The position numbers and the translations under genes are program-made. Source: Octopus sinensis (Eukaryota). Taken from it: 64,000 nt of DNA. The stretch covers positions 186,001 through 250,000 of the forward strand of contig NW_021831286.1 of the NCBI RefSeq assembly GCF_006345805.1, read 5' to 3'. Positions 2,356 to 64,000 of the stretch are shown one piece after another (within the stretch, counting starts at the first letter, position 1; every line of letters starts with the position of its first letter). Below the pieces are notes generated by a model, which saw only the letters and a program-made list of their open reading frames with translations, ran no database searches and had not been told where the DNA came from.

Positions 2356-3210
2356 CAGTCTGTACCAAAACATTATAATATTGGCAAATTTATCAATAAA
2401 TCATTTGTATCTCTACTTATATCAATTTTTAAGTGTTAATTTTTAGCATGTAATTTCTAAATTGACTTATCTAACTATTCTTAAATAAATTAATTCTTAA
2501 AAATATATTACATGCTAAAAATATATTGTCATGTACCAAAACATTATAATAATTTTTGTCATGTAACAAAGGATTATAATATTTTCTAGTATTTGATGTT
2601 TTTCCCTCGAGATTTTAGTACAGCATCTACTCTTTTTGGCATTGATTCAATTAAAATTTTTATTTCTTCAATTTTAATTTCATTCCATATGATTTTCAGT
2701 TCATTTTTTAGATCCTCTATCGTTTTTATTCCAAGAGCCATAACTTTTTGTTTCATTATTCCCCAAAGATTTTCGAATGGATTAAGATCAGGCGAATTAG
2801 GAGGCCATTTCATAAGATTAATTTTTTGGTTTTGAATCCACTCAATCGTATCTTTTGCAGTGTGTGCAGGAGCATTGTCCTGTTGAAAAATGTAATTACA
2901 TCCATCATACAACTTTTGACCAGTTGAAATTAAATTTTTTTCTAATATTTCTCTGTATACTAATCCATTTACAGTTGAATCAATAATTGAAAGCGGGCTT
3001 AACCCATTAAAACTCATCGCTGCCCACACCATAGCTCCTTTTCTGTAATGAAGCTTTTGATTTATGCATGAAGGATGAATTGTTTCATTTCTTTTACGCC
3101 AAACATACGCACCTTTTTCACCAATTGACAGCAGAAACTTAGATTCGTCAGAAAAAATAACTTTGGACCACTGTTCTATAGTCCAGTTTATTCTCCCTTT
3201 AGTTGCAATC
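2356..3210 (-). mobile_element. Tc1/mariner element, 5'-truncated (DDE domain plus one IR/DR-type end)
   Basis: WSKVIFSDESKF, FQQDNAPAHTAK, WPPNSPDLNPFENLW; terminus TA|CAGTCTGTACCAAAACATTATAATA at 2356, with inner direct repeats at ~2531 and ~2561. Confidence 0.9.
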
Positions 3211-3525
3211 ATTATTAATTTGTTTGCAATCATTATTATTGTAATTGGAATGATCTTTGGGAAAAAAATCAGACTTCGTCGAAATATGATGCGTTATTGT
3301 ATTTAAAAATATTTATATTTTTAGCAAAAAGTTTCTGGTCAACTAAATCACTATAAATACTAATTCACGAATTTAAGTATTTCAAATAACATGTTTTCTG
3401 TCTTATTTATTAAATTTTTTCGCTGCAGTTAAGTTTAATAACAATTAATATATTAATGCCGATTCCGGCTAAAATACATGCCAGCTTGTGACGCGGATTA
3501 AAATTTTCGGAAAACATTTATTTTT
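3211..3525 (+). repeat. ~310-bp near-identical direct duplicate of 5146-5460
   Basis: Visual alignment from attattaatttgtttgcaatc to aaaacatttattt shows only a few substitutions. Confidence 0.92.
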
Positions 3526-4332: not shown

Positions 4333-5291
4333 ATGCTACGAAGTATGTTGTTCATTATAAGTTTCTTTGGTTTAATTTCTGGTATTTTTTACTTAAATTA
4401 TATATGAGGTGATCTTTTTATGAATATTGACTTTGGAAATGTCCCGGTATAAAAGTAATGAAGTTAATATACTTAGAAAAATCAAATTGAGACCATTGAA
4501 AATGTAAATTAATTAGATTATATATTAAGGCCCTTCTACCTTTACTGAAGATTAATGAGGTCGAAGCAAATTCATCAATTGAGCACTTAACGATCAGAAT
4601 AGTGTATATATTGTAATTAAAATATTTAGTAATTCTTCAAATCTAACAGTAAATATAACTAATTTAAATATTCAAGAAACAAATGAAAAAGTTAAGTTGT
4701 TTAATGTGAAATAGTCGTAGGTATATTTTGGAAAAATCATCTATCAATTATTGCTTTTCATAGGGCTTTCGGATAACCAGAATTTCTGGAATGTGATGAA
4801 TAATAGTGAATCGTTGATAATTTTGTTTTATATTTTAGTAATCGAATATTATCATTAGAACAAATTTTATATCTCCATAATTTACGAATCAGTAAAACTG
4901 TGGATAGTAAAATTCCATGGATCCCCAATTTAAATACACCTGTTAAAAAAGTAATTAATAAAAATGTAAAAACAGACTTTGACAACTGGCTACAGTACTA
5001 TTGCAATCACAACAAAAAAAATAAAGAATTCTACGTTAGGCAAAAATCCATCTAAGTTTAAAAAACAATTTTCAAAAGGTAAATATTATAGAAAAAATTC
5101 GATATAATTAAAGGAACAATGTTCATCATTTTGTATATTATCCCAATTATTAATTTGTTTGCAATCATTATTATTGTAATTGGAATGATCTTTGGGAAAA
5201 AAATCAGACTTCGTCGAAATATGATGCGTTATTGTATTTAAAAATATTTATATTTTTAGCAAAAAGTTTCTGGTCAACTAAATCACTATAA
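4333..5291 (+). CDS. Orphan multi-exon protein with predicted signal peptide and C-terminal TM helix
   Basis: Splicing ~25-30 nt GT-AG introns gives MLRSMLFIISFFGLISGDLFMNIDFGNVPKNQIETIENALLPLLKINEV...; hydrophobic FIILYIIPIINLFAIIIIVIGMIF followed by basic GKKIRLRR; one internal exon junction near 5035-5090 is uncertain. Confidence 0.55.
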
Positions 5292-5714
5292 ATACTAATT
5301 CACGAATTTAAGTATTTCAAATAACATGTTTTCAGTCTTATTTATTAAATTTTTTCGCTGCAGTTAAGTTTAATAACAATTAATATATTAATGGCGATTC
5401 CGGCTAAAATACATGCCAGCTTGTGACGCGGATTAAAATTTTCGAAAAACATTTATTTAGAAAAATTGGCTTTAAAAAGAAATTTTCTAGATTTTTTTAA
5501 TTGTGTTCGTGTTGATTAAAAGTTTAAACAGAAATGTTTTAATTTTGTGGTGGAAATCAAGTTTTAGATGCTTTTAACAGAATGTTGAATAAAATTCAGG
5601 GTGATCACTGTCCAGTTTTATCTTTTCAGGCAACTTTCGAACACCTGGCTTCTGTTTTCAATAAATACCGACTTGGTTGCTTACGTTCAGGTGTTGCTTA
5701 CGTTCAGGTCGCTG

Positions 5715-7929: not shown

Positions 7930-8045
7930 TATACATTTGAAGTTTGTAATTAACAAATTGATTTATGAAGATAACATTTGAAGTTTGTAATTGACAAATT
8001 GATTTATGAAGACAACATTTGAAGTTTGTAATTGACAAATTGATT
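7930..8045. repeat. 41-bp tandem repeat, ~2.8 copies
   Basis: acatttgaagtttgtaatt(a/g)acaaattgatttatgaaga(t/c)a repeated. Confidence 0.9.
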
Positions 8046-8395
8046 AAAGAAAAACCACTTGGTTGCCATGCATTGTCCCTCTTTAAATATAAAAATAAAC
8101 TCTCAAAAAAGAGCAAAAATAATTTCTTTAAAGAATGAAAAAAATCATGGTGATTTAAAAAGTTAGCTAAGCACAAAAAAAGAAAATTTCGACTAAATAA
8201 TCAAAAATTTGAGCTTTTTTTAAAAATTTGATAAAATCTTAACAACTAGCTACAGTCCCGTAAATGACTAAGATATTGCTTGCCCCAGCAACACAAAGAG
8301 AATTTTTTCAAAGAGAACAGGGAAGTTAATTATTCTAATTATTTCATTTAATTAATGTGTTATTAAATAGATATTTTTGAATTCTTGCATTGTTG

Positions 8396-10016: not shown

Positions 10017-12060
10017 TTGATCCAATGCTCGTTAATTTTTCTTGTACTTTTGTCTCGTTTCCGGAAATCGAAGTCTATCCCGACACGCATTCCTAAATCG
10101 GACAGGATTCAAGTGGCTAATTCCTTAGCTCTAGTTGTGGAGCGGGCTCTGGCCTCGAATTCTTGGTGCAAGTTTCTTTCATTTGTCCCCGTCTGTCTGG
10201 GCAGCCCTTCAAACGGCCCTCTTTGTGGTGACCGCTTGTCCGTCTCGCAGCAAATTAAAACAGACTGCGAGTTTTTCAAAAATTCAGAATTCGATATCAG
10301 CTATTTTTCCAAATTCAACTGGGCGTTGGCGTGAAAGGAGCTTGCGAAGCAGCCGCCCATGGCATACAGTAGCTGACTTTTGCAAAATGTAATGAAATCA
10401 TATTCCTCCTTAAAATTGATGTCAAAAACGCGTTCAACTCGACTGTCCGAAGTCTTTTCCCTGCCTTATATCCGATCGTCCATTTGTCTTATGCCTCCCC
10501 CAGCTGTCTCTTGTTTGCCGATAATGTTATTATGTCTGAAACTGGTATTCAACAAGGCGACCCCCTTGGGCCCCTTTTATTCTCATTCGGTGTTGATCGC
10601 CAATTGTTTTCTGAGCTCAACATTTGGTACCTCAATGATGTTACTCTTGGTGGGGCTTTGGAGATCGTCAAGAATGATGCAGAAAAAGTTATTTCTGGTT
10701 TTGTGTCTATTGGGCTCGCTTTTAATAGATCCAAATCTAAGCTGATATGTTTGTCAGCAAGCCCTTCAGAATTCAAACATATTTTTTCCATCTTATCTCA
10801 CCATATTGAAGATCTGTGCATCACCCAGCTTGATGACCTTGTCATCCTGGGTTTTCCAATCAACAGCAGGGCTACTAAGAAAGCTTTGAGTAACAGGCAC
10901 GAAGAATTGGAAACCCTAATCTCCCGTATTTACAAACTTGAATCCCATTTGGGCATTTTCTTGTTCAAGAACTATCTCTTTATAGCGAAGTTAACTTATC
11001 TCATGCGCTCATCGCCCTGCTTTCTCAAACAAAATCACTTATCTCGTCTCGACAACGTGGTCTCGAAAGCGTTTGAGCTACTTGTAAATATCAAATTCAA
11101 ACCTTCAGACATGCGACGGGTTAATCTACCTATTCGTTACGGGGGCATCGGCATTTGTTCTTGTGGAGATTTATCCCTCCCATGTTACCTTTCCTCGTTG
11201 TCTGCTCCCGCTAGTTTCGTCAACTCTGTTCTTTTCTCTTTATCTGAACAACCCGAGTTGTTGGAATACGCGGCAGGTGTCAACATGTGGATTTCTCGTG
11301 GGTTTAAAATTCCGGACGTCCCCTCAGTTCAAAAGAACTGGGATGAAATAAATTGTACTCGAAGATATCCGCCTACGTGCTAAACAGTTTCAGTTAGCAA
11401 GCATTAATTGTGCCTGTCAACCCCACCCGCCCGATTTGCTTGACGCTTTGCCGATTTCCTCTGCTGGAATGTTCCTGGACAACGAATCCGTCCGCATTGG
11501 TTTGTGTCTACGCCTTGGGATCGAGATTTGTCAGGCTTATCAGTGCAGATGCGGAAAAGTCATTGACAGGAGAGGGGTACACCCATTCCCTTGTCGCCTC
11601 AGTGCCGGCCGAATACCCAGCCGCCTTGAATAATATTGTTTCGGTCCTGTAGCGGGTTGGGTTAGACCGTGGTGACGGAAAAGGTCCCGATGGGTCCACG
11701 CTATTCCCGTTCAAGGGGAGACTCGCTCTCGTTTGGGACGTCACCTGTGTCGACTCGTTTTCCTCGTCATCTCTTATTAACTCTGCTTCCCGTTCTGGCT
11801 CAGCCGCCGCGCATGCCGAAACGAAAAAAACCCAAAATACGCCTCATTGGAGAACACCTGCCTTTTCGTCTCCCCGACTTTCGAGACGAAAGCTCTGGAG
11901 TTCCTTTCGGGGATTGGTTTGATGATCTCAAGGAAGAGTCATGAGAAACGTAAGTCTAGCTGGCTTTTTCAGCGCATTTCGCTCGCGATATTGCGCTGAA
12001 ACTGCCTGTCTATTCGCTCGTCCTCTCAATCAAAGAATTAATGTGGATGAATTAGAATTT
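10017..12060 (+). mobile_element. CRE-like non-LTR retrotransposon, internally deleted and frameshifted
   Basis: RT motifs TGIQQGDPLGPLLF and WYLNDVTLGG (DD mutated), LP+RYGGIG, CRCG..H..CRLSAGR, GDGKGPDG; the N-terminal part of the RT is missing. Confidence 0.88.
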
Positions 12061-14351: not shown

Positions 14352-17016
14352 CAGGGGTGGCTAACCGGTCGATCGCGGCATGTTTCGTGGTCGATCGCTC
14401 GATATATAAATTGCTAATTATTTTTTTTGTATTTAAATTATTATAAAAAAAATATTTATCAATATTAAAGTAAGTATTTTTCACGTGTCTTGTTATGAGG
14501 TGTAACAAAAAGTCCAAATCATATAAATTTAATGCCAAATGGGAAAAAACTATATTTTTACGATGCACATGGAAAATGCACATGTATGCTATGCAATAAA
14601 ATCATTTCATTACCAAAAAGGGGAAATCTTTGTCGGCATTTTAATTCTTTACATCCCGAGTTCAACAAACACTTTCCTTTAAATTCCTTATTACGGGAAG
14701 AGAAAGTTGAACAATTAAAAAAATCTTTTTTTCACAACATACAATTTTGAAAAAGTTTATTAATTCGTCCATATCTGCAACAATTGCATCATTGCGAGTG
14801 ACTCGTCTCCTCGTAAAACATAAAAAACCTTTCACTGATGGGGAAATTTTAAAATCTTGTTTTTTGGAAGCTGCCGATTCACTATTTGATGGTATGAAAA
14901 ATAAACAGGAAATTTCAAATTGCATCAAAGAGCTTCAGCTCTCAAAACAGTCAATTGTCAGAAGGGCTGAAAGCATTTCTGAAAATCTTCTTTCTTTCGC
15001 AGTTAAAAAAGGATCTTTACGCATGTTCGTGTTTTCTCAATTTAGAATTACAGGGAAAGAATAGATATATTATCGATATGATCAGTTCAATAAATGCTTT
15101 CATAATGAAGTTGGAATTATGGATATCTCAAATCAGAAAAGAAAATTTACCCATTTTCCTAACATTGAAGATGAATTCACAAAACAACTTGTGAATAAAA
15201 ATCATTATGTCAATGAATTTGCTATGGTACTAGAAAAATAATGAACGAGTTTAATAACAGATTTAGCGATTTCAAGAAAATTACTATATTACAGTACCGT
15301 CATTGTTTTAGACATTCTGAAAAAATCCCAGTGTTTGATTTTTCTAAAGAAAAATCTTATTAAAAAAATGCTTTTCATTAAGCATTATCCATTTTTTTTA
15401 GTTATTTATTTTTCCCAATCTCATCGTCACTGTATTTTCGACATCTTGATCTTTTTATAGATTTTGTCGAAACTGGCCCAGTCATATGTTTTAGACATTT
15501 ACGATGCACATCCATAATCTGGAATTTTTAAAAGTTAAAACTTTTTTTTAATTAAAACACAAGTTAGTATTTAGTTACATCTCCTTTTTTCGATATTACA
15601 TCATCATGTATTCTATTTGGGATCGACAATACAAGTTTTGAATATAATCATCTCCCATCTTGTTCCATTCATCTTTTGCCATCTCCCATAGTTGCTTAAC
15701 GTTCTGAGGGTTTCTATTCTGATTTTGCTCTTTAAATAATGCCAGCAATTTTCTATTATGCTAAGATCTGGCGATTGTGCAGGCCAATTGTTTAAAATAT
15801 TCACTCTTTTTCAAGCAATAATTTTTGTAGACCGTGAAGTATGACATGATGCACCATCTTGTTGGAAAATAAAGTTATCATCATATATCTCAGAAAGCCC
15901 TTGTTCCAAGATTCGTTGATATTCTACGGAATCTACATTTCCTTCGCACAATATCAAGGCACTTTTCCATCATTCGCTGTTTTTTTGGGAAAAACGTCGA
16001 GACTCACGTACAAGATTCCTTTGAGCACGTGCCGAAAGAATACAATTTCTTCCAGATTTTGGTCTGTCGTAAAACCCATTTCCATCCAAATACCGTTGGT
16101 AAGGTGATTTACGGCGCATCTGGATATTCCAAGTAAAATCGATATTTCCTGTACGGTATGACCATTTTCTCGCATAAAAACAATTCTATGACGCTGTTCA
16201 ACAGAAAGTCGTGGCATACTGCTTTCAAATTAATTTAAAACACGTTTCCGATACGAAAATAGAAAAAAAGTATAAATTTTATTGAAATATAATGAATTTA
16301 AATAAAATGTCTAAAACATATGACTGGGCCAATTTCGACAAAATCCTTAAACATATGAAGAAGTCGAAGATAAAGCGAAGATAAGATTGAAAATGATAAA
16401 TATATAATAATATAGATAATACTTACTAAAAAACTTTTATTTTATTGGATTTTTCTTTAGAAAAATCAAACACTGGGATTTTTTCAGAATGTCTAAAACA
16501 TATGACCGGTACTGTATGCAGTTTCTTTGTTTCTCCGTTCATGGATGTAGACATCGAAAATATTTCAGAAGAATTTAGCAAGATTTTTGACGTTGATCGA
16601 AGAAAAAGTCAAATAGAATTATAAATCTAAAAAATGACATCACTTTAAAATTACATTCAAATGTCAACATGTGGAATTTATGTCTCAGAAAAATATCCAA
16701 TTTTGATTGATTCGTATCAACGAATTCTTTCATGCTTTAGAAGCACATATTTATCCGAAACATCATTTTCAAGTATGAAAATGATAAAATCTCAATACAG
16801 GACACGTTTAACGGATGACCATCCTTGGGGATTGCATGAGAATAGCAATAAGCTTATACGAGCCAGAATTTGAAATAATCGCAAGTGAATTACAATGCCA
16901 AAATCGCATTAATTTTTAATTGTAAAATAAAATTTTGATATTAAAATATATAGTCGATCTCCAAAAAATCGCAAAATGAAAAGTAGCTCGCCGGTGAAAA
17001 AGGTTGGCCACCCCTG
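14352..17016 (+). mobile_element. hAT transposon (SPIN/GTF2IRD2-like), defective
   Basis: TIR CAGGGGTGGCTAACC / GGTTGGCCACCCCTG (14/15 match); 8-bp TSD GTCAAAGC at 14344-14351 and 17017-17024; BED finger CMLC..RHFNSLH; HKKPFTDGEILKSC; C-terminal STYLSETSFSSMKMIKSQYRTRL. Confidence 0.95.
15292..16514 (-). mobile_element. Tc1-like IR/DR transposon nested in the hAT, internally deleted
   Basis: TA TSDs at 15290-91 and 16515-16; long imperfect inverted repeats with inner repeats (~15465-15500 / ~16306-16345); MPRLSVEQRHRIVFMRENG (HTH) and WPAQSPDLSIIENCW. Confidence 0.93.
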
Positions 17017-17879: not shown

Positions 17880-20800
17880 TACCTAGAGCAGGATGGACAA
17901 CCGCATCGGAGAGACAGACGTCCGATGGCAAGAACATCGTCTTTGCCATTGCAGAAGGGATCGAGTGCACGACCCGGAGGACTGGGTTAAATCCGCCCTT
18001 TCCCAAGTGTTGGGAAGAGCTTCCAGGATGCCCAGAAATGGGTGGCCTACCCTGCTTCAGTGTTTCAATCGACGCTTTAGCTCGAACCTATCGTTAGATG
18101 CACTGAAGAAGCTGGCCAAGACCCCTCCTCCTGGCTCGCGGGGGAGGACTGCCGCCGCTGCGGTTACGCCGTCAGGATGCCCCCCGTGTTCTGAACAACA
18201 CGAGCACCAGAGTAGTGAGTTATCGCTACTCTTGCAGGTTAAGGAGATATTTAGTAGGCATATCTCTGCGAATCGTGTTGTCCCCCTTGCGGACCGCAGA
18301 GTGACCCGAAAGATACCTCGGTGGCAACTCAGAAGTGACGTGATGGGTTGCATCAATCGTGCCATAGCTTACGCGATCGTGCGTGAGCCTCCGGAGACAA
18401 TGGACGAGTTTCTCTCTATTTGTACTCGGCACAGACAACCTATGATGAAATCACTCAGAGGCCTGCCCCAAAGAGTAGATGGAGAGAAAACATTGCCGCA
18501 AAAGTAGCCGCAAGGAAAGCCGAGCTGGAAGCGCTGACTGGGCACATTTTGAATGTGAGCAATGGGGTCAAGGGCAAGACTCCCCCCTTGGTGCGTACTT
18601 TACTTCGTCGGGAACGAGCTGCCAAATGGGACCTCAACGAGTTGAGGCGTGTCCGGGCAGAGAGAGGAGCTGATTCTCGTTTATCAGAAGAAGCTCTCAA
18701 CTCATGAGTCTCGGTGTCAGCGCAGGCGGGAGAACAACCTGTTTGAATTTAATCGCAGGTCGTTCTATCGTCGTCGGTTGCACGGAGAGACGAAGGAGGG
18801 TACCCAGCAAAAGGCCGAAATGCTTGACACATGGGGGAGTATGTGGAAAGCACGTCCTCGCAAGGGTGTGTCGTTTCCGTTTTGTGGACCCGATGCTCCC
18901 TTGATGACCGAGTCTTGTGGTGTCCCTGACATCCGCAAGAAGTTCGATGAAGCAGTAACCCGTCTCTCTGACTGGAAGACACCTGGGGTCGATAAAGTGT
19001 ATAATTTCTTTATTAAAATTGCAAACCTATCCATGATTGCATGTGTCGAGCAATCGAACAGTTTACACTAGACCCTGGCTCGATTCCAGAGTGGTTATGT
19101 ACTGGGGTCACTTATTTGATCCCTAAAGTAGATAACCCTTCCGCTCCGACAGATTATCGTCCGATAACCTGTATGCCCAACCTGTACAAGTTGATGACTA
19201 AGGTGGTGGCTACTGAGGTCAGAAATTTCGTGGAGGTGAATGGGATTCTGTCCGAGAACCAGTTAGGTACTCGGCGGGATTGCCAGGGAGCTAAGGAGCA
19301 GGCACTGATCAACAAATGCCTCGCGAGAGCCCACGGAAACTCACTAGTGTCAATGTGGGTGGATGTGAAGAAGGCATATGACTCGGTTGATCATGCCTAC
19401 CTCGTTGAGTGTCTGCGAAGGCTTAAGTTGCCAATGTGGTTTATCAAATTTGTTGCAACTGTGATGGACAGGTGGAACGTCCATCTAAATTACAACAAAT
19501 GCGATATAGGCGAGGTGAAACTAGAGAGGGGCATATTACAGGGCGACAGCATGTCTCCGCTGCTGTTCGTCCTCTGCCTAGAACCGCTGAGTAGAGTCCT
19601 CACTGCCCAATTCGAACAAATGTCGATCGAACATGAAGGAGGGTGTTTTAGCACCAACCATCTCATGTTCATAGACGACATTAAGCTGTTCGCTCGTCGT
19701 CTTCAGAGATCCTTCACTCAATGGGTAAAGTCCTGAAAGGTTTCATGAAGGCCGTGGGGTTGGAGCTCAACTACGACAAGTCGGCGACTAACACCCCTGT
19801 GTGTGGTGACCTAGTCAAAGTCTTGGAGGAACACCAAGGATATAAGTATCTTGGTGTGGTTGAGAGTCCAGCCTCATTAATCACACCCGAAACGAGAAAG
19901 TGTGTAGTGGAGGGTGTGCGTAGTAGGGCGGCAATGTTATGTAAGACTCGGCTCAATGCACGGAACTTATTTCATGCCTTGAACGAGTATGCCATCTCAT
20001 TGCTAAACTACTACGTTGGCCTGATCGAATTCGAGCCGAGTGAGTACGATGAAATGGACCTTATTGTCCGAAGAGTACTCCGAGAGAATCATGTCCACGT
20101 GTTGGCAAGCAATAAGAGAGATTGTACTTGTCTCGCGGGCAGCTAGGACGTGGACTGAGTAACATCGTACCTTAAGTGAGCGAATTCTTACTAAGATGCA
20201 CGACACCTTGTGGAGTGGGTCGAGTGTATCCCAAAGGAAGGCTGCCATCCTTGCTGCTGAAAAAGCGCGTGGTACACACCTAGGGACCATAAAAGGCTAT
20301 GTGTCGGCTAAGTATGGTCTAGGTGCTACCCAAGTTAATGTGAAGGAGTTGATCAAACTTCAAAAGGAGTCTTTAATTAAAAAGATCAACTTAAAAGTCC
20401 TTCACAAGACTCTCTTTAGCAGCCTGGACAACCCGCACATTGACGTATCGTCGTCATCTACGTGGCTGAAATATGGGAATAACTCTCCCCGATCAGAAGG
20501 GTTGTTCTCATATTTGCAGGATAGAAACTTTTTAATGGTCAACGGAAACAGTGTAACCACTGTAAGAGTAAGGCAATGACCGTTGACCATTTAGCCACGA
20601 AGTGCGGGAGTATGCTTTACCATGATTACACATGAGGCATAACGAGGTGGTGAGGTCCCTCCATCTTTTGCTCTGCAATAAGTACGGCTTGAGGCGGTCC
20701 AGAAAGTTGCGAACCCATCGAGTTCAATCGGTGTGTGAGAACTCGCGGGTGTGCATTAAGGTGGATACCCCCATACGCACCTCGATTGTTGTCCAGCACA

Positions 20801-21300
20801 ACAGACCCGACATTGTGGTCCACGATAAGGTCACCGGGGAGATTGTTATCGTGGAGGTGGGCATCACGTGCCTAGACCGTTTGCAGATAGTGGAAGTGGA
20901 GAAAAGGAGGAAGTATGACCTCCTTGCAAACGAGCTAGGACTGATGCACCAGTCCATCCCATGTCATCCCGTGTGTGATGACATGGGATGGACTGGTCAC
21001 CAAATACCACAAGCGGTACTTAAGACGTTGGATGTAGATAAGTCTCTACAGGCTTATATACAGTCAACTGTTCTTAAGAGGACTCTGGAGAGTGTCTCGT
21101 TTGATGCTCGCCGATCCAGCCCTTTCCTGACGTTTAGTCAGCAAGAGGCGCTGGACTGCACCTTCTCGAAGGTCTACAGTGCCAGAGAAGAGGAGGAAGA
21201 AGGGGAGGAGGTGCGTGGAGTGCCGCCTTCTGCTCACTTCGAAGGCTCTGGACTTAGTTAGTAAAATTACTTAGTTAATTAGTTTCTTTCTTAATAAAAA
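17880..21300 (+). mobile_element. Near full-length R4/Dong-like non-LTR retrotransposon (RT plus zinc knuckle plus RLE), frameshifted
   Basis: RRRENNLFEFNRRSFYRR; TYLIPK..DYRPITC; ENQLG; DVKKAYDSVDH; RGILQGDSMSPLLF; NHLMFIDDIKLF; YKYLG; HNRPDIVVHDK..IVEVGIT..EKRRKYDLLA; the 5' boundary is approximate. Confidence 0.9.
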
Positions 21301-21846: not shown

Positions 21847-23420
21847 TCATTGAAGAGAGACTATACGCAGAAAGGCAAATCCGACAAGATTTCCCTCATT
21901 CTGAACATGTGTTTTACTTGATTCTAATCCAGCATGGTTCTATAATAAGAATGCCCGACATACCAAAGGAAAAGTGATTTGCTGCCCTGGAATACAAGAC
22001 TCTATCAACTTTTCAAGATTAGCAGCCACTAAAAATGAGAACAGATGGGGACACCTACAACCATATCTCTACTCTCAATCAATCGGGACTCGACCAACTC
22101 TCTGGCCACTCCATCCGAAGTTTCCTTTCCTGGACGAAATTCAAATCGAATGTCCCTCAACTCAAAGTCCTCATTCCTACCACATCACTCATTCTACTCA
22201 ACCGAATACGGAGAATAAAGTTAATGACTGATGGAACACCCACTAATGGAGAATTGGATGAAATAGTCGACTCACACACCTCAGCCCCATCTGAAAAAGT
22301 CCATGTAGCCTCGTTTTCTTGATTTGTGGGGAATTTGGAATCAGAGGACTTAAATAGTGAGAAAAAGAGTACTTTGAAAGTAAGCGAAAGTGGACAATCC
22401 AACTCAAATGACTTGAAAATATGTGCCTTATCTCTGGCCTTCTTTAGTAGCTCATGTTTGAGGAGATTCTTGGCAGATAATCTAAAATGTAAAATCATGG
22501 TACCTCTTGGAATGATCCTTCTGAAGACAATCCCCAATAAATTTTCTAAACACCTTGGAGTAACATTTGAAACGGTCGGGAAAGTCGACACATGTCTCGA
22601 GAGTGGGCGGATCATTCCGTAAAGTGAGCATCAACACCTTCAATGGCGGAAATTTGTGGTAGGGGGCAACTCCTGTGGCCATTTCAATTGTGGTGATCCC
22701 CAAACTCCAAATATCGACTTTCTCGTTGTATCCGTCGGATTGTTGCATAATTTCTGGAGCCATCCAACACGGAGTCCCCACAAAGGTATGTCTAGACTGA
22801 TCTCGGTTGTCAAAATTGTTGTTAACAATGGCAGTGACCCCAAAATCGGCCAAAATGACCGATCCATCTGCCCCTAGGAGAATATTCGCTGCCTTAATGT
22901 CCCTAAAAATAAGAAAAAACAAAAACCTATGAATTTCGTGGGAGTTGTGTATATATTCGACTCCCTTCAGCACTTCACGAAGCACAGTTGCGATTGTGAT
23001 TTCATCCAAAATTCCACTTTGAGTGTACTTGCCAGATTTTATTCTCATTTTTATGTGATCAAGCAGTGAGCCTCTGTCACACAACTGCATGACAATCCAC
23101 AATTCTTCCTCCACAACAAACGATGTGTAGTATTTGACTACATTTTCATGATTGCAGTTTAACATGGATTCTATTTCTTTCTGTCAATTTATTTATGGTT
23201 TGATTACATGTAGTTTCTCAACTGATATGTTGTGGACTGATAAGTTGAGTTTCTTTATGGCACATCCACATTTATTTGACACGGAAATACCCCTGTGGAC
23301 CACTGCGGTCGCTCCATTTCCTTTCCGATCAAATAAATATTTAATACCTATTATTTCCCCTATTTGATAACCTTCTTTGGTTATCGGCCACTGGGTTGCA
23401 TTTGATAGGTTAGATATCAT
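21847..23420 (-). CDS. OXSR1: STE20-family kinase OSR1/SPAK (Fray) with C-terminal CCT domain
   Basis: [74 protein letters not shown]; CCT domain [39 protein letters not shown]. Confidence 0.93.
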
Positions 23421-29887: not shown

Positions 29888-30960
29888 TCAGGAATGTCAA
29901 AGATACGGCCCGCGGATCGTGTCTTAAGCCGATTACATTTTCAAATAAGAAATTCGCCATATTTTATAGAATTTTTATTTTATTTAAAGACCAAACACGG
30001 GTAAGCCAGTTAATTATTATAATCCCCGTAACCCCCGATTCAAGCGAGGGAGATCCTACTGAAAGGTTCGATCCTGCCCAATGAACGGCCTGAGACGACG
30101 ATGTCCCAAGGGTCAGAGTTCTAGAAGTCCTTTTTTCGGTAGGCATTAAGTGCCTCCTGAGCGTTGCCATATCCGATTGGAAGTTCCAACTGACATGGTG
30201 GACCCCATAACGCCACGCTAAGACTGGAAGGAAGGTAAGAGATCCCCATTTTTCAACTGTGTCGTACCAGAAGTACTCGTTGCCTCACGGGCAGGGGAAC
30301 GATAACGAGAATTGACTTCCGGATGAAAACTAGCCTTTTTCAGAATCGAACTCACGACTGTCCGGATCCATTATCCATAGCTTAGTCTTTAGCCATTATA
30401 TTTTATAGAATAGAAAAATCAAAAAGATTTAACCCTATTTTTATAAAAAACATTTTTAAATTAGAATATTCAATTTTAAAAATCTCATTTATATTAAAGA
30501 AATGTTTCTTAAGCTGCTGTCGATTATTTGTAATAAAAACTCACCACAAATTTATTCGCTTCAATAATCTTTACTTAAATGAATAATTTACCGAAAATAA
30601 TATTTCCGTTTAAAAAAGAGGAATTCATAATCAACAACTCTGAGCAGTATTCGAAAAGTATATAAAAATGTCTTTAAAAAATTGATAGACTTGAGACTGA
30701 TTTAAAAAATGGGACTTTCTGATTACAGTGAAAAAGTGTACATCGTTCGGCAATCTAATTTAAAACCTGAAAATTTGAGAAGTTTAAAACAAATTTCGAT
30801 TTGTTTAAAGCAGGGGTCGGAAAAAACAGGCTATCAAGGCATGTTTCATTAAAACCACGTGAACAAAGTTTTTCGCACATGAATTATATAAAATCGAAAT
30901 TAAGAAACAGAATTACATATTCAAATCTGGAGTCTAACCTCAGGTTAAAATCAACGAATT
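29888..30960 (+). pseudogene. Decayed hAT remnant interrupted by a SINE
   Basis: hAT-like end CAGGAATGTCAAAGATACGGCCCGCGG at ~29888; FSHMNYIKSKLRNRIT..LESNLRL at ~30870-30950. Confidence 0.5.
29972..30397 (-). mobile_element. tRNA-headed SINE family A, copy 1
   Basis: 13-bp TSD ATATTTTATAGAA at 29959-71 and 30398-410; A-box-like TGGCTAAAG, B-box GAGTTCGATTC; A-rich tail; alignable over its whole length with 60150-60547. Confidence 0.88.
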
Positions 30961-33139: not shown

Positions 33140-35923
33140 TATTATTATTAATAAACACACCGCAAAATAAAGTTATCTCGCTTGTGCCACCCTCTCCTGG
33201 ATGCGTTTTGTTAATCGCTTCCAAGTCCCTCTGTTCCTTGATAGTTCTCTCAAGTGCTCAAGATCGTCTGCTGATTTCAGCCTTTTTCCAATCAAAGTTA
33301 GGTCCTGGTGCAGGAGGGTTGGTAGAGTGATTCGTGGTCTTCTTGGAAGTTTGTTCCCGGGTGGGGGGCGTAGTGGTGTTCTATTGCGATATTTGCACTA
33401 ATTTTCCTCTCCATTCTTGCTTCTTATTTCTTTGTCCAACGGGTGTGCATTGTATCTGGAGTAGAGATGTTTGTTTGAAATCCGTTTTGGCCAAAAGATT
33501 CCTAGGATGTATTTTAGCTGCATTCTGTGGAAGGAATTGAGATTTTCCATTTTCTGCACTGTGAGTTCCCAAGAGAGTGCCAAGTTTCTTTATATGCCTC
33601 CATTTTTCCTCGTGTCGTTCGTCACATCGCCTCACTATAGTGTATTTTGTTTTCTCAGTGTTAATTTTTAGGAATGATTTTTCAAAAGTGTTGGCCAATT
33701 TGTCCATAGTACCTTCTAGTTGGCGATCTGTTGCCGTGAAATCTATGTCATCTGCAAAGATGACTTCTGTAATATGTCTGGGGATATTATTCCTGACATT
33801 TCGTAGGGTCGCCTGCAGATATACGATGAATGAGACTGGGGATAAGGCGTCTCCTTGGAAGGTGCCCTTGTTTGTTTCAAATACCCTGGATTTCTGTTTT
33901 CCAAGCTGGATAAATAGTTGAGTGGAGGAGAGTAGGTAACAAATTATTCTGATGCAATCTTCGTCGAGTAGTGGCGTTAATATTTGTATCATCTTAATTC
34001 TACTGATTGAGTTAAATGCTTTAGATAGGTCGATTCCCATTATGTGGTACTCTTCTTTATATTTTTGGCATGAAGCACACATCCATTTGTGGCTCCAAAC
34101 AGCATCGAAAGTTGATCTTCCAGAGACAAACCCACTTTGGCTGGGTCCGATAAATTCACGTAGTGGGCCTTTAATTCTCTCCAAAGCAATTAGTGATAGA
34201 ATTTTACGAAGTGAGTTGAGCTGAGGTTGGTGACGTTTCGGTTGAGGTTGGTGACGCACCTCAAATTGCACTAATGTCTTTTTCACCTTTCTCAAACTCT
34301 CTGTTCATGCTAGCATCCTTCAACGCTCGAGGGCTAAAGTCGTCGGTCAAAAGGAGGTCACCCTGCTAGGATCTGAAAAGATACAACATCACTATCTGCT
34401 GCCTGCAAGAGACCAAAGTCAAAGAAGGACTAAATGAACAAAATGCTGATCATGAGCTTATCTTGCTCCCCTCGGACTGTCACCATTACGGAATGGGGTT
34501 CGCGGTGGATATCAGACTTCGGGAATATATAAAAAGAATATGGAAAGTAAATGACAGAATCTGCGTAATTCAATTGGAAACTGGATCTAAATCGACAATT
34601 ACAATTATAAATGTATATGCACCTACTTCTCCAAGAGTCTCTAAAAACCAGACGGAACTGGATGACCTTTATAGTTCACTCTACGACCCTTATGGAAATA
34701 TCCACGAGCTATCTACTCTACATAAGCGGAGACTGGAACGCAAAGATCGGAAAAGGGACAAAGAACTGAGTTTTATAGGTACCCATGGGAGAGGTTGGAG
34801 GAACATGTCTGGGGCAACTATGGCCAACTTCGCAAACAATAAAAAATTATTCATTTGCAACACAGCATTCCAACATGCTGCAAGGCATATCACGACCTGG
34901 ATCGGAGAGCGCAGAAACTCAGACGGACACTCAATCAAAATATATAACCAAATTGACTACATACTTTGCCAACAATCACAGAAAGCTTTACTCTGTGACG
35001 CCAGAACATATGGAGGAACGGTAACATTGAGTGACCATAAACTATTGGTAATCAAACTTCTCCTAAAGAGAAGATTTTGGATTAACAGAGTCAAAAACAG
35101 ACACAGAGAAGCCAGATTAGCAGTCGAACGCTTAAGAAACTATCCTGTCTACTGAAATAACTACTCAGCTAAAATATCACAAACCATAGAATCGATCAAT
35201 CTCAATTTATATGGAATAAACTCAAAAACAAAATAAAATCAGTGGCAAAACATACGATTGGGACAATTCCCAAAACCTTCAAAGGAATACACGACCCGCA
35301 AATAGATTACCTCTCTCATATACAAAAGGATCTACGTATCAAACACATAAATACCCAAAACCAAGTGAAAACAGCTGAGTTCAAAATTCAAAGAAACAAA
35401 ATCATGCGAGAAATCAAGAAAAAATGTCAGAAAAACTACAAAACAAGGCTCAAAACCTTGCAAATGAAGTGGGGAAGTACAAAAACGAAGCGCAAATGTT
35501 TGCATCTGTAAAGATGCTAACGCGAAAAAAGAAATCGGAAACCTAACAATTCATGATGAACTCGGAAGAACGATTTACAACAACCAGGAACGCACAGACA
35601 CTATAGCCGACCACTATTGAAAAATATTTCAATTTTGAAAACGAAGAAACGCTTTACCCTTTCGATGGAGCGCCCAGAAAACTATCTAAAGAAATCACCT
35701 TATCGGAACTTAAAAAATCTCTGTCCAAACTAAACAACTAAAAAGCTCCAGGTCCAGATAATGTTAATGCAGAGCTCATGAAATATGCTCCTGAAGAGCT
35801 CCAAAAACTTATTGCTTACATCCTGAACAAAACTTTTGAAGAACACTCCAAAATTAACATCGGAATCAGAAAGTTAATCCCCTTACATAAACCCAGGAAG
35901 GAAATAGGAAAGCTAAACAGCTT
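33140..35923 (-). mobile_element. RTE-like LINE with inverted 5' segment (APE plus RT start on +, 34221-35923; remaining RT plus tail on -, 34220-33140)
   Basis: APE SFNARGL, LQETK, NVYAPT, NQIDYI, SDHKL on +; RT QSGFVSGRST, IDLSKAFNS, QGDALSP, FADD on -; (TAA)n tail; 11-bp TSD AAAGGCAAAAT at 33129-39 and 35924-34. Confidence 0.92.
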
Positions 35924-43585: not shown

Positions 43586-44516
43586 AGCTGTGTGTTATTA
43601 ATGTTAATCTTTTTTATCTTAGTTAAAAATAGAGTTAGCCGATATACTCCATTTATTCATAAAACATATTCACATGTCACAGAATAGTTTTCCAAAACAT
43701 TATAAGCATTCAAATAAGCTTAAATGTGGACATTATTTTTAACATTTTTTACAATTCTCCACGTTCTGACTGATATTGAACATGTTCACTGTCTAAAGTT
43801 ATCCCTTAATATTTCTCTTGCTGATAAAAGAGTAAAAAGTATTAAAAAATGAGTATGTTGATTTTATTGTTAGAATACTTAACATCTTTAGATCAACCTG
43901 TATTTTTGTAATACATAAACTCATGTATCCGGTCAGCAAGTGCTCTCCGGGAGAAAATTTTTTGCATACAAATAAGTTTGGCCAACCTTAACCAATCACA
44001 ATATAAAGTTTCCAAATGATGCAATTCCAGTCATTGAATAAAAGTACTATAAATAAACTAAGATTAAAGTTTTCAATTTCATCTGAATATAATCGGTCTT
44101 ATCATATAAATAGTAGAAATTATTGATTGATTCAAGATATGGTTATACTTGAATTCCATCTTTTTTTAATGTTCTCTTGGTGGCTTAAATTAGCCCGCAT
44201 TGGAACACCAAGAAGACACTGACTCGTCCATATAACGGGAAATTGAATTCTGTGATAAATGGAATGATCCAGACTTGTAGAGAAGTTTCCTTGAAAATGT
44301 GTCTTTTAAATCTAAAATGCAAGATTTAATTAATAGACTGTTTCAGTACTCCAATTTTTACACGTCGATTACTTCGAACTTATCGAACGTCTTTTTTCAA
44401 CACTCCGACTCGGCTCCATCTTTCATTCTTTCTGTCCTGTTGTAGAAGCATTGTATCCAACTGTCAATTGTGTGTAGTTGACTGCAGATATTTTTATCCG
44501 ATTACATCATATAGGC

Positions 44517-46109
44517 CAGTGGTTCTCAACGGTGGGCGATTCGCCCCCTAGGGGCGATTTTTTCTGCCAGGGGGGCGATTGCTGATTGCTAATATTTGAA
44601 AAATTAAAATCTTATGTTAGAAGTCGATAATCTTTGAAAAAATAAAAATATATAATCGAATCTAATATTTTATATATTTATTAAAATTTTTTTTTTTTAT
44701 ATATTCACATATTATATGTATTTAAATTTTTAAGCGTGATTTCTAGTTATCTTTATGGGTCGTGTTCAAAAAAAAGTCAGAATGTATAAAGATGAATATA
44801 TTTCTCTTGGATTTATTAAAGATCCTCAAGATCCTAATAAACCACTTTGTCTTCAATGTGGTACAATTTTTTCGAATGAGGCAATGAAACCGTCTCGTTT
44901 GATTGAACATTTAAAGCGAAAACATCATAATTCAATTGGAAAAAAGCCAGACTTTTTTCTAGAATTAAAAAAGAATTTTGAAAATAAAAACACCTTACCG
45001 TCAATCTTTAATAAAAATATATCTCAAAATGTCTCTGGATTATCTTATTCATATAAAGTTGCAGAGATAATCGCAAAAACTGGTTGCATTATTATTTTAA
45101 TTTATAGGTAATGCCCATTCGATTGCAGAAAATGTCATCCGTCCTTGTTTAAATTTATTTATAAACGATATCTTACAAAAAGATTCTTCAAATATTATGA
45201 AGACTATTCCATTAAGCAACGACACTATACGAAGAAGAATTGATGAAATTTCTAATGAAATTGAACAATCTTTAATTTTATTTCTCAGAGAACGCAAGTT
45301 TTCAGTCCAACTTGACGAATCAGTTGTCGTTGATAATCAGTCAATTTTGATGGCATATGTAAGGTATTACTTTTTATAAATACTTTTTATAAAGATATTT
45401 CGATGATGATTCTATTTTGCAAGAAGAGTTATTATTTGCAAAATCTTTAGTCACGGATACTACAGGATTGTCAATATTCAAAATGTTTGAATCTTATTTA
45501 TTCTTAAATGATATTCCATTTGAACATATTTTATCGTGCGCAACTGATGGCGCAATGGCTATGGTTGGAAAATATCGTGTTTTTTTTAGCTTTTCTAAAA
45601 CAAAAATCTCCAATGTCCACTTCAATTCATTGTATTTTACATCGGCATCATTTAATAGCAAAAAAATTATCTGAAGAATTGAATGCATCAATGCAAATTG
45701 TTATCAAAGTTATCAATAAAATTAAAAGAAACAGCAAGTACGATCGTGTTTTTCGTGAATACTGCACTAATCAAAATGAAGATTATGTTAGGTTACTTTT
45801 ACATACCGAAGTAAGATGGTTATCCAAGGGAAATTGTCTTGAAAGATTTGTGATATTAATAAATAGTATGATCGGAAAAAAAAGAAACAAACTAAATATA
45901 GAAGAAAGAGGCGACATTAGAATTACACTTACGAAAAGAAGTACAAATTTTGAAAAACTTGTCAATCTTCATCAACCACAAGGATCTCATTAAAACTCTT
46001 ATTTTGTAAATAAAAATTTTTACAAATGAAATAAGGGGGCGATATAAAAATTGGAGGGGCGAAAAAAATTCCAAGGGGACGATACAAAAATAAAGGTTGA
46101 GAACCACTG
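44517..46109 (+). mobile_element. hAT (Buster/Charlie/ZBED5-like) transposon with an intron-containing, internally deleted transposase
   Basis: Perfect 14-bp TIR CAGTGGTTCTCAAC; 8-bp TSD ATATAGGC (44509-16, 46110-17); BED PLCLQC..NEAMKPSRL.EHL, PLSNDTIRRRI, FSVQLDES, TDGA, HC..HR, LLHTEVRWLSKGNCLERF, C-terminal QGSH*. Confidence 0.95.
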
Positions 46110-46162
46110 ATATAGGCCAAACAACTAATTTACAGGTAGAAAAAGGCTATCTCCATACCTCA

Positions 46163-60149: not shown

Positions 60150-60547
60150 GCTTGAAGACTTATAATGGATTTGGATGGTCGTGAGTCGATTCCGAAGGAG
60201 GACAGTTTTCATCCTGGCTAATTCTCGTTATCGTCCCCTGCCCGTGCGGCAACGAGTACTTCTGGCACGACACAGTTGGAAATGGGGATCTCTTACCTTC
60301 CGGGCTTACTTAGCGTGGCGACGGGGTCCACCATGTCAGTGGAAATTCCTTCGGATATGGCAACGCTCAGGAGGCACTTAATGCCTTCCGAAAAAGGACT
60401 CTTAGCTTCTCAGACCCTGGGACATCGTCGTCTCGGCCGATTCTTGCGGAAGGATTGAACCTTTCAGAAGGATCTCCCTCGTTTGGATCGGCGATCACGG
60501 GATTAACTATAATTAACTGGCTTGCCCGTATTGGTCTTTAAATAATA
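60150..60547 (+). mobile_element. tRNA-headed SINE family A, copy 2
   Basis: 10-bp TSD AATGTCTCTA at 60140-49 and 60548-57; GGTCGTGAGT-CGATTC B-box remnant; homologous to 29972-30397. Confidence 0.88.
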
Positions 60548-62295: not shown

Positions 62296-63493
62296 TTAAT
62301 TTAAATAACTGTAATTAGAATAATTAGTCCACAGCCTATCAATGACTTCTTCTATGACCATATTATTTGCATTATGTTTAAGTAATCGTAAAATGAGAAA
62401 TCCGTCTGTTTTCAAATAGTTTCTAACAAAACCGGTTCTTAATTTAATCATATGTTCATAAGAAACCGAATTTGGCCATTTAATAAATCGTCTAAAAAAG
62501 TTAATTCGAAATTCGGTTACAGCAAAATTCACAAACCAATTCAATAAATTTAAAGTTGTGAATAGTCCCAGCAAAACATACCAAAACCATAAAAAAATAA
62601 ATATTTTTTCAATGAAAATATTGATTGGCAAAACACATTCAACTGTGTAAATGTGAGGTCGACTTAATTCCTGGATAGAAAAATCACAAAATGAATCGGT
62701 GGGAAAGTAATTAATTTTTGAGAGTAAATTTATGCCAGGGATACTTGATAGACCATAGAGCCAAAAATTGATCCCCAAAACATATTTGATAAGGAAAAAT
62801 TGGCAGATCAAGTTCAATAAAAATAGAATTTTTGTGGCCAAGTAACTGAAAGAAATGCATGAGCAGTTATTTCGGAATACGTTGTAACCAAATATAAGTT
62901 TAACTATTTTTTGGTGTAATCTGGACTTTTTCTGCTCAGAAGAACGTGTTTGAAGATAATTGTCAATTGTAGTAGATAATACTGTGGAAACTTGGTCAAT
63001 GTTGTCCAAATTGTCAATCTTTTGAACATAGGCTGCTTTGGAAATAATTTTGTTGATATTAATTCCGCAGTGATTTGAAACAGATCTCCAAAATAAAATT
63101 GGAAGGTAAAACATGAGCCCAGTAAGAAACAAGAAAAAATATATCCAGTGATAATACTTCAGACTCAGTGTCTGAATTCTTGAAGAATTATTTTTCAAAG
63201 GAAGAAAAGCGTAGGTCCCGTTCATAAGACATACTGCTTCCGTGAATTTATTATATGGTCCTAAAATATATTAACAACACGAAATTTAAATTTTAATGAC
63301 TAAATTTACCTTTAAAATCTCCTGGAGTCCAGCACGAAATTTGGTTTCCAACATATTGTGTAGATAGAATTATTAATGCAAATAAAGCAAGCATTAAAGC
63401 AGTATAACGATAATGTAATCTATCTATTAATTCATCATCTTTTCTGTCATCAGATTTATGTATTGTTTCAGTAGCAAACTTAACAAACTGCAT
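62296..63493 (-). CDS. Innexin (gap-junction protein)
   Basis: DELIDRLHYRYT, QYVGNQISCWTP.DF, C..NGTY, YYHWIYFFL...FYLP, FPTDSFCDF, VECVLPINIFIEKIFIFLWFW, YLKTDG..ILRL; one intron at ~63261-63309; start codon uncertain. Confidence 0.95.
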
Positions 63494-64000
63494 AAATTTA
63501 AAATTTCTTATTTTAAACAAGTTTATCAAACAAACAATTTAGGTTAACCAATAATAAACAAAGTTTCAAAATTAATATAAATTATAAATATAAATAGTTT
63601 TTTTTGAATGAACAAATAAATCAAATGAAAGTAAATCAGCTAACTACGACTAAAAGGTGTTTGTCAAAAATTTAAGAATCAGCGCTGCGTATGGAATGGC
63701 AGTTTCCGCATAGTTAAACAATGAAAAAAGGCTCTTTAACTGGACAAAAAAACAAGAGATTTACTACCAAATAGGTATGACTAAAACTTCGCCAGTTCTT
63801 GTCAGCACCTCGAAACGAAAGAGGTGGGCTTTGACTCAATATGCGAATAGAAGTTACGATTAGATGGAACTCGACTCGATTATTTAATAATTGTTTTTAA
63901 TTTTTTTGATCAAGACAAGAAACCAAAGGCAATTTGTGTCACGCGCTATAAATGAAACGGGTGCCTAAAGTGAAACGCTGTGACCTTGAATTTAATTATC

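Follow-up and report, generated by a model that had tools for sequence, protein, structure and literature searches.

Two candidate micro-introns in the transposase gene of a defective Buster-type hAT transposon

The DNA considered here is a stretch of 64,000 nucleotides from contig NW_021831286.1 (positions 186,001 to 250,000, forward strand; assembly GCF_006345805.1, filed under Octopus sinensis), hereafter called the window, whose own numbering is used throughout. At 44517-46109 it contains a 1593-bp region that we read, from its terminal inverted repeats (TIRs), its target-site duplication (TSD) and the relatives of its transposase, as a Buster-type hAT DNA transposon. The transposase gene of this element is interrupted by two short segments, one of 25 nt and one of 31 nt, each beginning with GT and ending with AG, and the protein sequence becomes continuous with that of related transposases once both are removed. 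We argue that this is probably a dead Buster copy in an animal with ultra-short introns, most likely a dicyemid, and that the two segments are genuine U2-type GT-AG micro-introns gained in the lineage of the transposon.

Ends, coding capacity and state of the element

The element is bounded by exact 14-bp TIRs, CAGTGGTTCTCAAC at 44517-44530 (+) and its inverted match at 46096-46109 (-), and a search of the whole window with up to two mismatches allowed returned only these two sites. Their length lies within the 14-16 bp described for Buster elements (PMC12637253). Immediately outside them the 8-bp TSD ATATAGGC is present at 44509-44516 and again at 46110-46117, with T and A at positions 4-5, which fits the Buster consensus nnnTAnnn as opposed to the nTnnnnAn of the Ac family (PMC3517528, PMC3499496), although a single site is consistent with this assignment and not proof of it. 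The exactness of both TIRs and TSD suggests a fairly recent insertion. Just inside the ends lie clustered GGGCGA/TCGCCC motifs: an array of four copies at 44531-44582 (+), within the first 66 nt of the element, and at the other end (46030-46095, +) two exact GGGGCGA-type motifs at 46037 and 46057 accompanied by a near-copy, GGGGACGA, at about 46076. Only four such motifs occur in the other 62 kb, and we presume the subterminal copies to be transposase binding sites.

Between these ends the transposase is encoded in four open pieces, which translate in frames 1, 2, 0 and 1 and which were used as separate queries. With the fourth piece, an exhaustive profile-free search matched 2296 relatives, the best full-length of which measure 585-607 residues at roughly 50% identity; across the pieces, identity to relatives ranges from 48 to 54%. 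The best full-length relative, here P0001 (592 residues, about 50% identical), served as the reference for the layout of the gene. The named relatives are annotated as "SCAN domain-containing protein 3-like" proteins from rattlesnake, aphid and beetles. Relatives of the element carry the Pfam domains PF27073 (FAM200-ZBED5_RNase-like) and PF27046 (FAM200-GTF2IRD2-like), ZBED5 being the same as Buster1 (PMC3606216). A scan of the window pieces against a local copy of Pfam returned neither of these two domains, only a borderline BED finger, and the solved structures in the PDB contain no sequence match. The Buster assignment is one by sequence similarity, motifs and termini.

Exon 1 (44755-45082, +; MGRVQ...IAKTG) holds the start codon and a putative BED zinc-finger region and aligns with residues 6-110 of P0001 (tblastn, 44770-45084, frame 1); its Pfam zf-BED match scores 19.6 bits (E = 9.4e-4) against a cut-off of 20.6 bits, and the CxxC...HxxxxH pattern is visible. 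Exon 2 (45108-45363, +) aligns with residues 111-195 (tblastn, query 110-196 at 45107-45367, frame 2) and contains the motif QLDES, which we take to include the first catalytic Asp. The first part of exon 3 (45395-45587, +) corresponds to residues 196-258 (tblastn, query 195-269 at 45393-45617, frame 3), contains CATDGA, presumably with the second catalytic Asp, and ends in a run of eight T residues. The remainder of exon 3 (45583-45993, +) includes the CxxH and RW motifs, a deletion junction, the C-terminal 45 or so residues of the protein and a stop codon; it matches P0001 residues 258-349 and 549-592 in the same frame (tblastn, query 258-370 at 45583-45921 and query 549-592 at 45859-45990, both frame 1).

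Two lesions separate this gene from a functional one. The T8 run at 45580-45587 coincides with a frameshift, the next block of P0001 similarity continuing in another frame from 45583, and it may be a homopolymer-length error of the assembly. Downstream, an in-frame deletion with its junction at about 45856-45861 joins P0001 residue 349 or so to residue 549 or so, removing about 199 residues (350-548). The missing part, which has no counterpart in the window, includes the motif LVETGFS of the relatives, where by pattern with other hAT enzymes we assume the third catalytic residue, a Glu, to lie. The window copy thus does not hold the complete DDE triad together with the C-terminal hAT dimerisation domain that autonomy needs. 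Because of the frameshift and the loss of some 199 residues with the presumed third catalytic residue, the copy cannot produce transposase, and we regard it as a defective, non-autonomous, Ds-like derivative. Since its ends are intact and it makes no transposase of its own, it could have moved only in trans, presumably mobilised by an intact family member. An earlier reading of this DNA, made from its letters and open reading frames (ORFs) and called here the sequence-only reading, had proposed perfect TIRs with an 8-bp TSD, a Buster-type hAT affiliation and a T-run frameshift near 45580; the exact 14-mers, the duplication on both flanks, the SCAND3-like relatives with their FAM200-ZBED5_RNase-like domain, the fit to nnnTAnnn and the T8 run all agree with it. 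It had also placed a large internal deletion near 45865, and the deletion is real, although its position is better given as above. Intact TIRs and TSD make its statement that the element had moved with its introns a reasonable one, without demonstrating it.

No second copy of the family was found by DNA similarity elsewhere in the 64-kb window. The exact ORFs of the element are absent from the protein collection searched, the exon-1 ORF has no match above 55% identity in protein collections, and a search with the terminal 23-mer returned one unrelated metagenome contig (L009, discussed below) and nothing in prokaryotic genomes. The window does contain a degenerate Buster-like relic at 14943-16882 (+), which retains only the part equivalent to residues 388-607 or so of the relatives (at 14943-15282 and 16649-16882) and is too decayed to be judged for introns; between its two parts lies an insert of about 1.2 kb carrying long inverted repeats, the arms of which, at 15304-15500 and 16305-16500, are 82-87% complementary.

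The two segments and the corresponding sites in relatives

The first candidate micro-intron, GTTGCATTATTATTTTAATTTATAG, occupies 45083-45107 (+), measures 25 nt and interrupts a Gly codon in phase 1 (G|GT). The second, GTATTACTTTTTATAAATACTTTTTATAAAG, occupies 45364-45394 (+), measures 31 nt and interrupts an Arg codon in phase 2 (AG|A). Both have GT..AG ends, neither has a counterpart in the relatives, and their GC contents of 16% and 13% lie well below the 28-31% of the four exon pieces. Neither length is divisible by three, so each disrupts the frame, and with both taken out the translation runs ...IAKTG|NAHSIAENVI... and ...MAYVR|YFDDD.... In the tblastn comparison, P0001 runs across both junctions without loss or gain of a single residue. 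For junction 1 the projected gap is exactly zero in 29 of the 34 relatives that align on both sides; for junction 2 the closest relatives again give zero, and more distant ones -1 or +1. Were intron 1 retained, a stop codon at 45109-45111 would end the product at 118 residues, and an in-frame TAA inside segment 2 ends any read-through from exon 2. The sequence-only reading had already picked out these two segments as frame-shifting GT..AG inserts whose removal restores conserved Buster sequence, and both translation and colinearity with P0001 uphold it.

GT..AG ends on both segments would arise by chance with a probability of about 3e-6 under the dinucleotide frequencies of the element, or about 1e-4 if the boundaries are allowed to slide. 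The exonic sequence, at 29% GC, contains no stop in 391 codons, where random sequence would show about one in every 12 codons (P about 5e-16). From this we conclude that the frame had been maintained up to recent times, contrary to what a copy full of random damage would show. Intron 2 has a peculiar makeup, consisting of GTAT, two perfect tandem copies of the 13-mer TACTTTTTATAAA (45368-45393) and a final G. A GTAAGG at 45359, five bases upstream, was considered as an alternative 5' splice site of this intron and discarded, since a stop codon follows it at once. We also considered whether the segments arose by tandem duplication of flanking exon sequence. Compared with shuffled introns, the intron halves showed no greater similarity to the exon ends beside them (p = 0.17 and p = 0.92), and this origin is unsupported.

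If the segments were old introns of Buster transposase genes, they should recur in relatives. We therefore aligned the DNA of seven relative families to the four window pieces, with two beetle genomes, one aphid genome, one snake genome and one metagenome scaffold among the material. In the contig that encodes P0001 (L002, a Logan contig of either genomic or transcript origin), the exon-1 match ends at 591 with exon 2 projected to start at 592, and exon 2 meets exon 3 at 846/847. Both sites fall inside one uninterrupted 607-codon ORF in the family of P0003 (L003, an ENA metagenome scaffold, and L004, a Logan contig), and inside a single block covering residues 93-394 in the Acanthoscelides obtectus genome (L005, P0055). 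In Popillia japonica (L006) junction 1 lies outside the covered part and the pieces abut at junction 2 (2123/2124). Aphis gossypii (L007) and Crotalus adamanteus (L008) each have a decay-type frameshift at junction 1 without any intron-sized insert; at junction 2 the pieces abut at 2195/2196 in the aphid, and in the snake exon 2 ends at 2114 (residue 84) and exon 3 starts at 2118, again abutting. The last family, from an ENA contig (L001, P0151), is a decayed copy with a frameshift and no intron-sized insert at junction 1, and with a small overlap caused by indels and no insert at junction 2. Base-to-base abutment of the exon-2 and exon-3 pieces is thus seen in L002, L006, L007 and L008, and none of L001-L008 has an intron-sized insert at a covered site. 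The sequence-only reading had held that Buster transposases are usually single-exon and that introns shared at these positions by relatives in other taxa would tell against a gain; the single ORF with which Buster elements are normally described (PMC12637253) accords with the former, and the comparison just given found no such sharing in the seven families.

Some of these relatives resemble the window element in their termini as well. TIRs of the same type (CAGTG.TTC.CAAC) occur in L001, L006, L007 and the JGI metagenome contig L009, and common to the group are also a subterminal palindrome of GGGCG type and a central TA in the TSD: CATTATAT around L007:1173-3616, GTCTACAC around L001:4148-6906, and likewise a central TA at L009:1759-1836, where the first 23 nt are identical to those of the window element. 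L007 and L001, for which both ends are available, measure 2.4-2.8 kb. Unlike the window element, L001, L006 and L007 are uninterrupted at the intron sites (junction 1 of L006 being outside coverage), so that the ORF is continuous in relatives that have these termini and live in hosts with introns of ordinary length; L009, which preserves no more than the first 70 nt or so of an element, is silent on introns. The distribution suggests that the Buster subgroup with these termini is widely, and perhaps horizontally, spread.

Host introns, host identity and other features of the window

The window is animal DNA, with genes for an innexin, an OSR1/SPAK-like kinase, an RPA2-like protein and an ankyrin-repeat protein, reverse transcriptases of long interspersed nuclear elements (LINEs) and a Tc1/mariner remnant. 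Its own introns can be read in the OSR1/SPAK-like kinase gene at 22082-23420 (-), which has four clear GT..AG introns of 27, 27, 24 and 22 nt. Splicing its exons yields an ordinary kinase domain by motif and by Pkinase profile. The 24-nt intron, in frame and free of stop codons, splits the HRD motif at its Arg codon, and the exons on either side of it match profile positions 47-121 and 123-250. A further candidate intron of 26 nt lies downstream in the same gene. The innexin gene at 62296-63500 (-) has a single longer intron, which lies between 63329 and 63255 and measures about 40-49 nt. These two genes supply a small sample of verified host introns, in or near whose range the two candidate introns of the transposon fall in length and AT-rich composition; the description of the segments as host-style in the sequence-only reading is borne out by the kinase introns. 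The window was also surveyed ab initio for GT..AG sequences bridging two open frames. The count of GT-AG bridges of 18-35 nt, 47, turned out to be the exact median over all 256 pairs of boundary dinucleotides, and the survey was dropped because it does not discriminate.

A 2026 survey of 51 animal genomes reports a lower intron limit for animals of under about 30 bp and finds such short introns only in myxobolid myxozoans and in Dicyema japonicum, both of which have reduced splice-site signals (PMC13644364). The innexin of the window is 28-34% identical to innexins of molluscs, nematodes and flatworms, the top match being Octopus sinensis at 34%, and no cnidarian is among its named matches. 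Because introns this short are reported only from the two groups, and because the innexin is closest to those of protostomes, we infer from intron size and innexin matches that the host is most probably a dicyemid, which is not an identification. A myxobolid was considered and judged less likely, since the named innexin matches are molluscs, nematodes and a flatworm, without a cnidarian.

Other repeats are scattered through the window. A Tc1/mariner-type remnant at 2586-3233 (-; Pfam DDE_3, E = 3e-19) has a 215-residue uninterrupted ORF with no micro-intron there, and it is overlapped by one copy of a 300-nt direct repeat (3211-3510 and 5146-5445, 99% identical, 1935 nt apart). LINE-type reverse-transcriptase ORFs (Pfam RVT_1) lie at 17893-21261 (+), 10484-11383 (+) and 33381-35155, the copy at 18-21 kb having 43-51% GC against a genome GC of about 30-35%. 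A repeat of about 300-540 nt is present in inverted copies 30 kb apart (29994-30298 and 60234-60532, 81-98% complementary in blocks), and a 41-nt unit stands in three tandem copies at 7933-8055. Scans of the window for tRNA genes and Rfam families returned nothing.

Origin of the segments and comparison with known systems

Gain of introns inside a mobile element is likely on this evidence, and unproven. Relatives with nothing at both positions imply that the introns are new sequence inserted into a formerly continuous ORF rather than old introns shared across Buster, and junctions at which no residue is lost or gained indicate an insertion of sequence and not a conversion of exon into intron. 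Several points weigh against reading the segments as micro-introns gained in this lineage. A single copy of the family is available and it is dead, so that the segments could be private to it. At 31 nt, intron 2 exceeds in length the host introns nearby (it would be 18 nt without its 13-nt duplication), intron 1 begins with GTT where the reported weak host consensus is GTa, and the splicing of both segments is deduced from the DNA sequence. The identity of the host is inferred rather than established. The nearest relative, at about 50% identity, leaves a long interval for the origin of the introns, and retrieval of relatives through ORF-based gene calls is biased towards intron-less copies.

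One rival reading takes the segments for ordinary insertions or repair filler DNA in a decaying copy, comparable in kind to its frameshift and its deletion, with coincidental GT..AG ends. The single copy at hand leaves their presence across the family unsupported. The copy is demonstrably damaged at two other places, by the frameshift and the deletion, and the 13-nt tandem duplication within segment 2 is typical of replication slippage. Nevertheless, we think this explanation very improbable: chance seldom supplies GT..AG ends to both inserts, as the estimates above indicate; both are codon-exact, with no codon lost or gained; they lie in or near the narrow size range of host introns and are far more AT-rich than the exons; and the stop-free exonic codons mark a copy otherwise little decayed. 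Still more remote is the idea that errors of assembly or sequencing produced the interruptions. Long-read assemblies do make homopolymer errors like the T8 frameshift, and for the T-run only is such an origin plausible; specific 25-nt and 31-nt inserts bounded by GT..AG correspond to no known error mode, and the TIRs and TSD are exact.

A rather different alternative accepts the segments as real introns and makes them older, as introns of ordinary length that an intron-bearing Buster sublineage carried into a micro-intron genome, where they shrank. Transposase genes of hAT elements with several introns do exist, the five-exon gene of BuT2 in Drosophila among them (PMC3942097), and dynamics of intron gain and loss are documented in the transposase genes of CACTA elements (PMC4158355); the long unsampled branch behind the nearest relative and the ORF-based retrieval, raised above, leave room for such a sublineage. 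Against it stand the absence of any intron at the covered sites in seven families, intron-aware gene models from beetle, aphid and snake included, and the description of Buster elements with a single ORF (PMC12637253). On balance we consider shrinkage unlikely.

If the segments are instead micro-introns gained in the transposon's lineage, a more specific account can be offered, tentatively and at somewhat less than even confidence: both would be working introns, inserted de novo after Buster entered a lineage with ultra-short introns, on whose spliceosome the intact members would now depend. As for how the gene most likely works, the host spliceosome would take both micro-introns out of the transcript of an intact family member, full-length transposase arising only after this splicing. 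The spliced product, of about 590 residues, would combine a BED finger with an RNase-H-like core, bind the GGGCGA subterminal motifs, cut at the TIRs and insert with an 8-bp duplication at nnnTAnnn. Protein from unspliced mRNA would end after 118 residues or inside intron 2. The P element makes a truncated product that binds DNA when an intron is retained, and by that analogy the 118-residue, BED-finger-only protein made when intron 1 is retained could, speculatively, act as a DNA-binding competitor. Since a DNA transposon moves as DNA, the introns would travel with every copy. The ordinary spliceosomes of animals are not known to remove introns shorter than about 30 nt (PMC13644364), so the introns could, again speculatively, confine a working element to its host lineage.

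The origin of new spliceosomal introns is a long-standing question for which clean, recent animal cases are scarce, and a multi-copy transposon amounts to a large set of dated replicas of a single gene. Should the host contain both copies that have each intron and copies that lack it, one could read from them directly in what order, when and from what source sequence the gains took place. Were the de novo account true, the many dated copies of the family would record recent intron gain in a shortest-intron animal, and the transposon would be functionally locked to its host, its introns of about 25 nt being expected to stay unspliced in ordinary animals after horizontal transfer; the case thus bears on how transposons adapt to, or become confined to, their hosts. 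For the present it is a lead and not a result, resting as it does on one defective copy and with introns in transposase genes already known. The sequence-only reading had put the element forward as a model for intron gain. Being defective and non-autonomous, this copy cannot itself serve as a working model, and the family would become a useful one only if the host has intact and polymorphic copies and RNA shows splicing.

Among known systems, the closest likeness is to the Buster hATs (TcBuster, AnBuster), ZBED5/Buster1 and the SCAND3-like genes. The element shares with them the 8-bp TSD with central TA, TIRs of 14-16 bp starting with CAG, a BED finger at the N-terminus that is borderline here, and the QxDES, CATDGA, CxxH and RW motifs, and its intact relatives of 585-607 residues are about 50% identical to it. 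Described Buster elements measure 2.5-3.0 kb and have one uninterrupted ORF (PMC12637253), whereas this element measures 1593 bp, has two candidate micro-introns, a frameshift and a deletion, and cannot encode an active enzyme. In its state of decay it resembles the internally deleted Ds elements of maize, which derive from Ac and are mobilised in trans: both have intact ends and an internal coding deletion, and movement in trans is presumed for the element. Ds, however, has Ac, while an autonomous partner of the window copy is not among the sequences searched. In needing host splicing for its transposase mRNA, the element would join maize Ac, medaka Tol2, Drosophila BuT2, the P element and CACTA; their introns are of ordinary length and none of them is a Buster element, whereas the introns here, at 25 and 31 nt, are at or near the reported lower limit for animals. 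In a literature search of partial coverage, neither a transposase gene with micro-introns nor a Buster element with introns came up. Intron-bearing hAT transposase genes as such are familiar, and what appears to be new in this element is the presence of micro-introns in the transposase of a Buster.

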